Assembly: GCF_040938485.1 (NCBI RefSeq)
Contig: NW_027272096.1
Location: 248,001-312,000, forward strand
Source: Diadema antillarum
Taxonomy: Eukaryota
Direction of reading: 5' to 3'
Length of the DNA: 64,000 bases
The position numbers and the translations under genes are program-made. The notes below the pieces were generated by a model. It did not search any database and had not been told where the DNA came from. It saw only the letters and a list, made by a program, of their open reading frames with translations. Of this stretch, positions 7-64,000 are shown piece by piece (within the stretch, counting starts at the first letter, position 1; every line of letters begins with the position of its first letter).

Positions 7-3000
7 GTGAATTTTTCAACAGGCGAACTGTGCCTTCAGTTTCATAAATGAGATGAGATGTACATCTACTTGCACAGATGTGAATGAGAATAATTTCTTG
101 CAGTATGACTCTTANNNNNNNNNNNNNNNNNNNNNNNNNNNNNNNNNNNNNNNNNNNNNNNNNNNNNNNNNNNNNNNNNNNNNNNNNNNNNNNNNNNNNN
201 NNNNNNNNNNNNNNNNNNNNNNNNNNNNNNNNNNNNNNNNNNNNNNNNNNNNNNNNNNNNNNNNNNNNNNNNNNNNNNNNNNNNNNNNNNNNNNNNNNNN
301 NNNNNNNNNNNNNNNNNNNNNNNNNNNATTTCCATTAGACTTACCTTACATATAAAACAAAAGTTTTCCCCTTTTCCTTCAATACAGTGCCAGTGTTTCA
401 GAGTACACTGTTTTTCGTGNNNNNNNNNNNNNNNNNNNNNNNNNNNNNNNNNNNNNNNNNNNNNNNNNNNNNNNNNNNNNNNNNNNNNNNNNNNNNNNNN
501 NNNNNNNNNNNNNNNNNNNNNNNNNNNNNNNNNNNNNNNNNNNNNNNNNNNNNNNNNNNNNNNNNNNTTCATGTGTGTATATGATTATATGCATACATTA
601 TTATATCTTTTTATCCTTGCATTTTTGTAGTGATGGTGAGTAGGCTAAAATGTAAAGAAAAATAAAGATTTGACTCCCAAATACCATGAAAATATATTTC
701 AGCATTTTTTTTTTTTATTGCTATGATTAGAACTTCATACATATTGATAATGATTACACTTCGCATTTTGGGAAGCTGATATTGTTGTTAACCTTGCGTT
801 TCTGGCACATAAGTTCACTCTTATGTCTTATTCTCTACATAGGGTGAAGTGTCATTTATTTTGAGTGACACTGCTGCAACGAACCTCTGGCTTCCATCCG
901 AATTGGGAACTGTGCGGGCCATCCAAGCAACATTTGGAGCTCCACTTAGCTCCGTGAATATAATCGAAGTCTACGGTTGCCAAGGTAGGTGCAATTTGAG
1001 AGATAATTTGGTTAACCACACTCTCATAACTGCTTCCTTACTTTTTCCTGCTATTCGAGAAAATATAATTTTGTTGGAAAAATTATGTTTGCAAAGCTAC
1101 AGAAAATTGATACGTATCTTTACAGACGTAAAAATGTTTCCATTTTCCATTTTCCATTGTGAATTCCATTTCTCCGTAGACCGTGAACCTAGTAAGACTC
1201 CAAAGACAAGCCTGTACGTCCAAAAGCCAAAAGTGATACTATTTGAAACTACAGCAATACCAATTCGCTAAAATCCCTATAATGCAGCACCTCTTTATTT
1301 ATGAAAATACAAAAAAAAATGTATATCTTTCATCACCTTTTATAAGAATCACAGGAGAGCCTTTTTCATACTCCTTTGATATCTAGCACGGTAATGGTGT
1401 CAACATAATTGACCTGCAAAATTATACTTTTCCATTAAATGTGATTGCTCACACTAGGGGCATCCTCTACTGCGCCACCTACCACAATGGCATCCTCTAC
1501 GGAAGCAACAACTGCAGGTAATAAAGAAGAACTCTTCTCATTTTCCAAATTTGGTCAAAGCTCTTCTGTTGATTAGTGTAAACAACCAGAATTTCGAAAT
1601 TCAGCATTGTAGATTCCCTCCCAACCTCATGAACATTTTGCTCACTTGAAGTGACGATTTGAAAGTGATATCAAAAGATTTAATAAAAGAATTATCCATG
1701 CAATTCATACGCAAGCGTTCAAAATGATTTTCTTACAGAATTTAGTGTCTTATACACAAAAGCTGTTCCTTGGAAAATGGAATTGACCGACTTCCCAGTT
1801 AACTGTTTGGTTGTGGTGATACGATTGAAAAATAGCAGGATGGCGAATACAACCAGAATAATCAGTATCATCTACTTTCTACATTTGTACTTTTCTATAC
1901 ATCAATCTGAATATGGAAGACGATTTTTCTCCAACATCATTGAACCATTCTATGATCATCGTTGTGTTCGAGTCCATCGCAAGACTATATCCTCCTTTTA
2001 GAATATGATAATGTTTGCTTTCCGGTCGGACAGGCCAATTTCAAATCAATTCCTCTCATGAGCACAGTACACGTATCACGCATCTTCCTATGGTTCTTTC
2101 TCTACATAAACCAAAATAAACTTCGAGACATACGATTTCAGAATCAAATTTGTTCCACATTGCGATTGAATTTTGTTTCTCAATCCAAAAGCTGTCTTCA
2201 TGAAAAGGTATAGGCTACAGTATGTCGTATTTCCGGTAAAATACCGAATGCAATGTGACTGCTTCTTTACAGATCCAGCTCAAAAACTGAAATGAAAGGC
2301 AGTTATCAATTTTATACAAAATAAAAAAAAACACAAGTTTAGACAAATATGTCCATCACAACATTGATTTGATGGTCTTCAAAGTATTTAGATATAAGAC
2401 AACTCAACAGTTACTGGTTTTAATATTTCCTTTCCTTATTGCACTTTATACAAAAATAACGACAGTCACTCAGTCTTTAGGTGTTTAGGTTCAAGAAAAA
2501 GGTAGAGTTATTGGTCCAAAACTATATAGACCTTTCGTTTATCCCTTTACGCACTATTTGTCTGTAGAAATCCTGTTCCAATACTTTTAGTGAAGAACCT
2601 TGGGACTTAATAGACATGCTGTCTCTGATCTTACAGAAATTACTAGTCCCAAGGTTAGTACACGAGGAACAACCACTTCTATCCCTGGAACTGAACAAAC
2701 CACGGTGGTAATAGAAGAAACAACTGCTCCACGTAGAGCAACAACTACAACTCAGACCACCGTCACATATACCACGTCAGCAACTGAACAACCAACAACA
2801 GCGCCAGGTAATTAAAAAAAAAAAACATTCCGATTCCGACCCATTAGATGAGTCTATACCTCAGTGGAACACTTTAATCTGGGGAAAAACAACAACTAAT
2901 GTCTGAGACTTCAAGTTGACTTGCTCTTTCAAAATGCTTCCAGACACATAAGAGACATATTTGTATGACAAAAAGAGTAACCTACAGGTAGTACAAAAGT

Positions 3001-64000: not shown

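Follow-up and report, generated by a model that had tools for sequence, protein, structure and literature searches.

We analysed a window of 64,000 nucleotides from the echinoid Diadema antillarum (assembly GCF_040938485.1, contig NW_027272096.1, with the GenBank equivalents GCA_040938485.1 and JBFRCO010001208.1; positions 248,001 to 312,000 of the forward strand; coordinates below are those of the window unless stated otherwise). We conclude that it is probably an internal segment of one very large gene of the secreted gel-forming-mucin type, with its modules laid out as class 1-1 cassettes, that is, flanked on both sides by phase-1 introns. In the encoded chain, linkers rich in Thr, Ser and Pro (PTS linkers) alternate with compact beads carrying a Cys near each end, namely a canonical F5/8 type C (F5/8C, discoidin) domain, single-exon D beads and two-exon A/B beads, with TIL and VWC-like modules in addition, and a seven-exon unit of 3.83 kb has been amplified recently in tandem.

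Exon chain and class 1-1 modularity

With a GC content of 35-42% and short open stretches that run between AG and GT dinucleotides, the window has the appearance of an intron-rich animal gene on the + strand; the minus strand holds no genes, only antisense shadows of coding exons. The exon chain was rebuilt with a simple donor and acceptor scorer and a dynamic programme, in which frame consistency was the sole demand and intron phase was left free. Its raw output, a chain of 81 exons, was then curated by hand: the two F5/8C exons, the TIL and VWC-like exons at 8.9-10.8 kb and exons at 25061, 25945, 30301, 33693 and 1458 were added on the basis of RefSeq junctions and domain content, and two doubtful picks were dropped. 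An earlier splice scan with strict thresholds had been too stringent, and counts of exon classes from the raw candidates alone were indecisive.

Across the whole window, the curated chain joins 89 intact exons on the + strand into 4,702 aa free of stops, or 93 exons into ~5,000 aa if four corrupted exons of array unit 2 (see below) are counted in. These figures bear out the ~95 exons and ~4,900 aa, open at both ends, that had been proposed in a preceding interpretation of the letters by themselves (hereafter, the sequence-only reading). The non-repeated part (843-35,860) accounts for 40 exons and 2,053 aa without a stop or a phase break, and ~55% of all exons are near-identical copies within the 3.83-kb tandem array. 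Splicing in silico, the check suggested by that reading, thus yielded a phase-consistent, stop-free chain, and its junctions match the RefSeq models at 12,172-26,459, where the exon boundaries are identical in the models P0034, P0004 and P0033. P0034 (XP_071476397.1) aligns to the window at ~100% identity, and its locus (L003) matches window 4062-36506 with 100% identity.

The introns of the 89-exon chain are overwhelmingly in phase 1 (70 phase-1, 18 phase-0 and 0 phase-2). Within the non-repeated part, phase 1 is found in 27 of 39 introns (binomial P = 4e-6 against an expectation of 33%), and every single-exon PTS or D module (19/19) is class 1-1. The remaining 21 non-repeated exons (1-0, 0-0 and 0-1) build two- and three-exon, cysteine-framed modules of the A/B, F5/8C, TIL+TILa and VWC-like kinds; phase-0 introns lie exclusively within such domains, and phase-1 introns stand at both ends of every module. 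All modules of the curated model therefore show the class 1-1 symmetry that Patthy associated with exon shuffling, and the RefSeq models, which are themselves predictions, share the junctions. The description of the gene as built entirely from phase 1-1 cassettes holds for modules and fails for exons, given the 18 phase-0 introns inside domains. With this correction, the rebuilt exon chain and its 1-1 modularity are confirmed.

The composition of the 4,702-aa model is dominated by T (21.7%), S (8.7%) and P (7.5%), and the PTS exons consist of 55-85% T/S/P. Long Thr/Ser/Pro-rich domains such as define gel-forming mucins are thus present, in agreement with the earlier proposal of a PTS-rich, modular, mucin-type protein. 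Pfam recognises the F5/8C domain at 13973-15154 (PF00754, 40.7 bits, cut-off 28.2) and TIL at 8885-9099 (28.1 bits, cut-off 24.5). Matches to VWC and TILa in the window fall below the Pfam threshold, and a spliced VWC-like module gave neither a Pfam match nor a PDB sequence match. Mucin2_WxxW, the CysD domain, has no match among the domain exons, P0034 or P0005.

Conservation and a species-specific cassette loss

The window was compared with the other D. antillarum haplotype (L006, 97-99% identical) and with the orthologous locus of D. setosum (L005, 81-95% identical). AG/GT and reading frame are kept in all 38 exons for which a D. setosum orthologue is available (38/38), and the only length changes between the species, 24 nt and 3 nt, each fall in a PTS exon. 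Identity to D. setosum is 95.6% in exons versus 87.6% in the 80-nt flanks, with a pN/pS of 0.36. The exons located between NCBI models are likewise conserved in D. setosum together with their splice sites.

One D bead documents how a cassette can disappear. The D4 exon of the oldest array unit has been truncated by a deletion to a stub with a stop (34156-34285) in both D. antillarum haplotypes, whereas the same exon is full and open in D. setosum (L005:31239). This deletion is a natural, species-specific cassette loss, and the neighbouring exons stay in frame. The sequence-only reading had derived from the 1-1 symmetry that cassettes can be skipped or duplicated in frame, and the D4 deletion is a real example of in-frame loss.

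Fold and relationship of the beads

None of D1-D4, A or B matches a Pfam family, PF00754 being matched solely by the domain at 13973-15154. The D beads were therefore assessed from predicted structures and profile comparisons. AlphaFold2 (AF2) models of D2 and D4 reached pLDDT values of 96.4 and 83.7, respectively. When the models were searched with VIA-align, all 50 listed matches of D2 were F5/8C-type discoidin domains or near fold relatives (Z 7.7-8.6), and the best matches of D4 among those listed were FVIII C2 and neuropilin b1 (Z ~8). For the two models, nearly all of the 50 listed matches are FV/FVIII C2, neuropilin b1/b2, DDR and discoidin II domains (Z 6.9-8.6); DDR2 and lactadherin C2 are also among the matches listed, and the end-to-end alignments cover 110-124 residues. 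According to the VIA-align warning, a Z of ~8 is only middling, and the argument is carried by the consistency of the list and by the profile link. Foldseek by itself gave a weak E for D2 (~3e-3). In HHalign comparisons, the D family was linked to PF00754-positive crinoid domains at 99.3% probability (E 1e-20) and to the gene's own F5/8C domain at 80% (E 1.4e-5), and D4 was linked to D1-3 at 75% (E 2.4e-5). The predicted fold, a discoidin-type beta-sandwich with Cys close to both ends, and these profile matches support the assignment of the D beads as strongly diverged discoidin domains.

The D family is a rare one: a set of 1.84 billion clusters contains 30 representatives. Diadema and the crinoid Antedon are the only named organisms among the matches, the rest being single-exon metagenomic fragments of unidentified animals. 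Two contigs of the Tara Pacific metagenome ERZ28654717 (L001 and L002) carry D4 exons that are 75-92% identical to those of the window, and are environmental DNA of Diadema or a close relative.

For the A/B bead, a discoidin origin is only suggestive. HHalign of the A/B bead against discoidin-like profiles is collinear yet weak (28-42% probability, E 3e-4 to 6e-4) and places the Ser-Gly stretch of the bead as an insertion in the discoidin alignment. The neighbours of exon A in the space of ESM, a protein language model, are mostly F5/8C clusters at 0.89, and exon B yields none. In a metagenome scan, no relatives of exon A were found, and the scores from hmmsearch of A/B against the D profile lie inside the shuffle range. 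The sequence-only reading had called the beads discoidin-derived; the proposal stands for the single-exon D beads, on the strength of the AF2 fold matches and the 99.3% HHalign link, and falls short for A/B, with an HHalign E of 6e-4 at 28% and an hmmsearch no better than shuffles.

Every A exon is closed by an acidic loop of the form [D/E]SGSG..DFSGSGSG[D/E]SE, which is invariant in the paralogues, in both haplotypes and in D. setosum. Its Ser-Gly dipeptides in acidic context fit the consensus for attachment of glycosaminoglycan (GAG), and, judging from this motif, the loops may carry GAG chains.

A recent tandem array of seven-exon units

Positions 36267-64000 (+ strand) are occupied by a tandem array of 3.83-kb units, namely U1 (36267-40093), U2 (40094-43594), U3 (43595-47424), U4 (47425-51255), U5 (51256-55086), U6 (55087-58916), U7 (58917-62747) and a partial U8. 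In self-BLAST, the units measure 3,827-3,831 bp and are 98.5-99.9% identical; units 4-7 differ from one another at 2-3 positions per 3,830 bp. Tandem Repeats Finder missed the array, the period being above 500 bp. Taking U6 as the reference, the seven live exons (55087-58561, + strand, 406 aa) are PTS 55087-55128, PTS 55467-55490, PTS 55702-55866, the D4 bead 56167-56577, PTS 57078-57269, A 57720-57961 (phase 1 to 0) and B 58420-58561 (phase 0 to 1). A (TC)n microsatellite right behind the donor of the fifth exon (57270-57330 and its equivalents) is the chief source of length differences between units.

Upstream of U1 lies the oldest unit (33.7-36.2 kb), which is 75-93% identical to the others and consists, within 33693-35860 on the + strand, of PTS 33693-33854, the D4 remnant at 34156-34285, PTS 34381-34572, a dead cassette at ~34735-34886 and an A/B bead (35010-35251 and 35719-35860). 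One such dead PTS cassette is present per unit (57480-57591 in U6, + strand): an in-frame TGA interrupts it and the AG acceptor is missing, and its donor is retained. The TGA is also found in D. setosum (L005, ~32308-32497), and an intact paralogue lies at window 2637-2807. A 30-nt micro-exon behind the TGA was considered and is unlikely, its acceptor having a G at -3.

All seven exons are open with intact splice sites in six of the seven full units. Unit 2 contains a low-quality stretch (40935-43440, + strand), which combines a 351-bp junction deletion exactly at 40,934 with 21 unique 1-bp insertions. The deletion takes away the 5' part of D4, and the insertions frameshift D4, the next PTS exon and B. 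Biological decay of unit 2 was weighed and rejected, since its few substitutions (7), set against 21 insertions that mostly extend short runs of the same base, favour assembly error. Unit 2 is thus probably an assembly artefact, made of unpolished or mis-joined long-read sequence, and, because it looks mis-assembled, the copy number of the array is unreliable.

Could the array as a whole, at 36-64 kb, be for the most part a product of the assembly, or else a repeat that is decaying and not expressed, so that the real gene is much shorter than 4,700 aa here? The 2-3 substitutions per 3,830 bp that separate units 4-7, the mis-join and 21 unique insertions of unit 2, the dead cassette in each unit and the fact that the searches run surfaced no RefSeq model over the window's array would all be in line with this. 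We nevertheless consider it very improbable, since six of the seven full units keep seven open exons with intact splice sites, the insertions of unit 2, accompanied by only 7 substitutions, resemble sequencing errors rather than decay, the unit also occurs in D. setosum, where its D4, PTS and A exons are open, and both species have an annotated paralogous array that has diverged.

One gene or several

Along the locus, the upstream NCBI model (6,209 aa, + strand) ends at window 11,411, the RefSeq model P0034 spans 14,062-26,503 and an NCBI model of 397 aa spans 29,128-36,367; a model of 1,455 aa and P0005 lie far downstream. Taken at face value, these would be several separate genes: a VWD mucin that ends at 11.4 kb, an F5/8C-D-PTS protein at 12-26.5 kb, a small protein at 29-36 kb and separate array proteins. 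In D. setosum, where the upstream model has 5,918 aa, Gnomon places its cuts much as it does in the two haplotypes of D. antillarum, and the array models P0005 and P0039 also stand apart.

The break points themselves, however, look artefactual. The 6,209-aa model overruns a consensus GTAAGT donor at 11,394 and reaches a stop 15 nt on, and neither AATAAA nor ATTAAA occurs in 11,411-11,993, i.e., before the next exon; P0034 overruns a GTAAGC donor at 26,459 in the same manner. The starts of P0034 and P0004 are internal Met codons, within the F5/8C domain and within a TIL-like exon, respectively. In the 397-aa model, the ATG at 29128 precedes the acceptor, and the translated polypyrimidine tract mimics a hydrophobic signal peptide, which makes it an annotation trap; a signal peptide is possible in the upstream model only. 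The gaps from the upstream model to the next one are 35-2,650 bp, the shortest being on the other haplotype, where an upstream model of 4,491 aa ends just 35 bp before P0004. Because the break points appear artificial, the intron phases agree across both inter-model breaks, and D. setosum has kept the exons that fall between models along with their splice sites, we read the locus as one gene. Its neighbouring NCBI models (those of 6,209, 1,087 and 397 aa, and the arrays 60-80 kb downstream) would then share one transcript, and a division into separate genes appears improbable.

Hits to VWD, C8 and TIL, taken from the precomputed Pfam table, fall on the upstream model in three assemblies, with three VWD listed in two of the three models. 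No VWD was found in the window or in the downstream locus L004. The expectation that VWD-C8-TIL assemblies lie outside the window agrees with these hits on the adjoining upstream model, the last exons of which lie in the window, in both haplotypes and in D. setosum. L004 (contig 370,738-394,543), 60-80 kb beyond the window, contains additional TIL and VWC-like modules, a further discoidin-like domain split over two exons and a long PTS exon with an open stretch of 344 codons, mostly PTS. It also holds a second array, with 2.34-kb units composed of PTS, a D4-like bead and PTS, without an A/B bead. The internal VWC-like modules are below the Pfam cut-off, and the 3' end of the gene is beyond the window and L004. 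If the locus is one gene, its length exceeds 146 kb.

Module order in the non-repeated part

All modules described here are on the + strand. The first is the B half of an A/B bead (843-984, phase 0 to 1), paralogous to the B exons 4103-4244 and 35719-35860. Its partner A exon may lie upstream of the window or within an N-masked stretch; runs of N occupy 115-327 (213 bases) and 420-567 (148 bases). Two class 1-1 PTS linker exons follow (1458-1517 and 2637-2807), the second being paralogous to the array's dead cassette but intact. A/B bead 1 comprises A (3144-3391, phase 1 to 0, with the acidic Ser-Gly loop at its end) and B (4103-4244, phase 0 to 1); it has no Pfam family and shows the weak collinear HHalign match to discoidin-like profiles described above. 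The short class 1-1 PTS exon behind it (4669-4704) is 100% identical in D. setosum.

A series of cysteine-rich modules then begins with a VWC-like module of 10 Cys in three exons (5968-6020, phase 1 to 0; 6615-6725, 0 to 0; 7225-7315, 0 to 1; VWC E 6e-4, below cut-off) and a TIL plus TILa/VWC-like module, also in three exons (8885-9099, 1 to 0; 9934-10029, 0 to 0; 10705-10756, 0 to 1), of which TIL scores 28.1 bits. A Pro/Thr-rich 1-1 exon (11353-11394), where the 6,209-aa model ends past its donor, separates these from a TIL-like plus TILa/VWC-like module of two exons (11993-12213, 1 to 0; 12831-12942, 0 to 1), the first of which contains the internal Met used as the start of P0004. The class 1-1 PTS exon 13529-13573 is present in P0004. 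The canonical F5/8C domain is encoded by 13973-14277 (1 to 0) and 15010-15154 (0 to 1), and its junction is found in RefSeq.

Three short class 1-1 PTS exons (16853-16879, 17438-17512 and 18012-18065) lead to the D beads, each a single 1-1 exon. D1 (18569-19000, 144 aa, with a Cys near either end) is separated by a class 1-1 PTS exon (19802-19960) from D2 (20592-21017), for which the discoidin fold is predicted. A long class 1-1 PTS exon of 286 aa (21448-22305), with the 24-nt in-frame length difference to D. setosum, precedes D3 (23253-23678). In the intron before D3, an AT-rich trinucleotide-like repeat (23102-23240) reads as poly-Ile. Two further PTS exons (24382-24540 and 25061-25132) are followed by a VWC-like module (25525-25553, 25945-26049 and 26426-26459), at the donor of which, GTAAGC at 26459, P0034 runs on. 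Position 29128, where the 397-aa model begins, lies in the polypyrimidine tract before a small 1-1 exon (29180-29209). This exon, a VWC-like module that evolves fast (29873-29901, 30301-30417 and 31538-31577) and a PTS exon (32110-32172) complete the series up to the oldest array unit. The open reading frame and the cysteines of exon 30301-30417 are kept in D. setosum.

Proposed organization of the polymer

Because the upstream model with VWD, C8 and TIL hits is taken as part of the same transcript, the polymer would multimerise through VWD assemblies, as in MUC2/MUC5 or hemolectin. The PTS linkers would be extended and densely O-glycosylated, and the discoidin beads might act as lectin-like or protein-binding cross-link nodes at the position held by CysD in vertebrate mucins, with the Ser-Gly loops possibly bearing GAG chains. 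Owing to the 1-1 symmetry, unequal crossing-over or exon skipping would alter the number of beads in frame, a process illustrated by the array, by the differently composed array downstream and by the species-specific D4 deletion.

Several observations weigh against this interpretation of the locus as one giant mucin-type gene. Sequence comparison does not link the A/B bead significantly to discoidin, and O-glycosylation, GAG attachment and the function of the beads are features that we infer. Unit 2 is frameshifted as assembled, every unit contains a dead cassette, and the units are so nearly identical that their number may have arisen in assembly. Neither a signal peptide nor a VWD domain nor a cystine knot was observed directly, the VWD, C8 and TIL hits being entries in a precomputed table. 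Finally, at least three NCBI models are annotated within the window, and the positions at which NCBI divides the locus are alike in three assemblies and could correspond to real transcript ends.

A different role for the protein was also considered. Rather than a mucin of mucus, it might be a matrix protein akin to SCO-spondin or a structural adhesive or cohesive protein, like the tube-foot glues Sfp1 and nectin. Discoidin, VWD, C8 and TIL domains occur together in the adhesives of echinoderms, and mucin-like transcripts are found in their adhesive cells (PMC7037938); moreover, the crinoid bead/PTS model described below lies next to a model with many TSP1 and TIL domains. On the other hand, Sfp1 and nectin are not reported to contain long PTS arrays (PMC7037938), whereas more than one third of the residues here are T/S/P, and a Pfam search found no EGF, lectin or TSP1 domains in the window. 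We consider this alternative unlikely; it bears on tissue and role more than on architecture and is compatible with the gel-forming-mucin-type gene proposed here.

Going further, there might be a class of giant polymeric mucins peculiar to echinoderms. In it, diverged discoidin beads would replace CysD, a minimal, split discoidin would carry an inserted, GAG-bearing acidic Ser-Gly loop (making a true mucin-proteoglycan hybrid) and the number of beads would be tuned by in-frame gain and loss of 1-1 cassettes, the design dating to the crinoid-echinoid split. We put this forward as a tentative proposal, less likely than not to be right.

The locus would be of interest in several respects. It offers an alternative way to interrupt PTS regions, with discoidin beads in place of CysD, and a clear large-scale case of 1-1 cassette evolution, with a recent seven-exon amplification, a second array and a species-specific loss. 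It adds new domain families, namely the rare D domain and the A/B bead without any family assignment. For annotation, the gene is at present scattered in RefSeq over several models labelled "uncharacterized". Diadema is a grazer of ecological importance, and the polymers of its mucus or adhesive may take part in surface defence and attachment.

Comparison with known systems

Like MUC2, MUC5AC and MUC5B, the Diadema gene would encode a very large secreted polymer in which PTS regions are interrupted by small disulfide-bonded domains, with VWC-like modules and upstream VWD/C8/TIL hits; unlike in these mucins, the beads are of the discoidin type rather than CysD. The PTS region of MUC2/MUC5 lies in one huge exon, whereas that of Diadema is spread over dozens of small 1-1 exons and multi-exon repeats. 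Lubricin (PRG4) has a mucin-type PTS core with acidic Ser-Gly sites resembling those for GAG attachment. In this combination of PTS core and acidic Ser-Gly sites it is similar to the Diadema protein, where the GAG assignment is at the level of the motif, but it has no discoidin beads or VWD.

F5/8C domains in invertebrate relatives of gel-forming mucins have already been described, including insect hemolectin/hemocytin (with 3+2 VWD) and lophotrochozoan, hemichordate and cephalochordate forms, as outlined by Lang et al. 2016 (PMC4948705). Echinoderms are missing from the F5/8C-bearing groups listed in the summary of that paper, a gap that the Diadema locus would fill (PMC4948705). The hemolectin-type relatives, as presented there, resemble the Diadema locus in the order of three VWD (hits on the upstream model) followed by F5/8C and in having PTS near the F5/8C region, so that the first half of the 3+2 VWD layout is compatible with the upstream hits and the F5/8C domain. 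They differ in that Diadema has one canonical F5/8C and many diverged discoidin beads alternating with PTS linkers.

DMBT1 (gp340, salivary agglutinin) is a mucin hybrid of SRCR domains and Ser/Thr-rich SIDs, the tandem-repeat copy number of which varies (PMC9038570). It shares with the predicted Diadema protein the beads-on-a-string layout, the alternation of Cys-rich domains with O-glycosylated spacers and a bead number set by repeat copy number. Its beads, however, are SRCR domains, 7-21 in number, it has CUB and ZP and no VWD polymerisation module, and it is much smaller. Sfp1 of Asterias and nectin of Paracentrotus are, like the predicted Diadema protein, secreted echinoderm discoidin proteins, Sfp1 also containing VWD and C8 (PMC7037938); their discoidin domains are canonical and, as described, they lack alternating PTS linkers, tandem cassette arrays and Ser-Gly loops.

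The sequence-only reading had named an already described protein of the same architecture as evidence against its proposal. We found no paper on an echinoderm mucin in which diverged discoidin beads alternate with PTS linkers, nor on the crinoid model discussed next, F5/8C-bearing gel-forming mucins as such being known (PMC4948705).

The closest counterpart is an uncharacterized protein of the crinoid Antedon mediterranea, XP_071944560.1 (P0017), in which at least nine discoidin-like beads (Pfam F5_F8_type_C, 34.3 bits) alternate with PTS linkers. Its gene (L010, OZ206120.1) is built of 636-nt phase-1 exons, each encoding one bead and one linker, with introns of ~100 nt. The neighbouring models, one of 3,471 aa with a faint F5/8C match and one of 4,008 aa with TSP1 and TIL, are 190-426 bp off, and the locus is probably another giant gene cut up by annotation. 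Unlike Diadema, the crinoid joins bead and linker in a single exon, lacks the A/B bead and the Ser-Gly loop, and has a neighbour with TSP1 and TIL rather than VWD. Because the crinoid exons each encode a bead together with a linker, the comparison suggests that the bead/linker cassette design is old within echinoderms.

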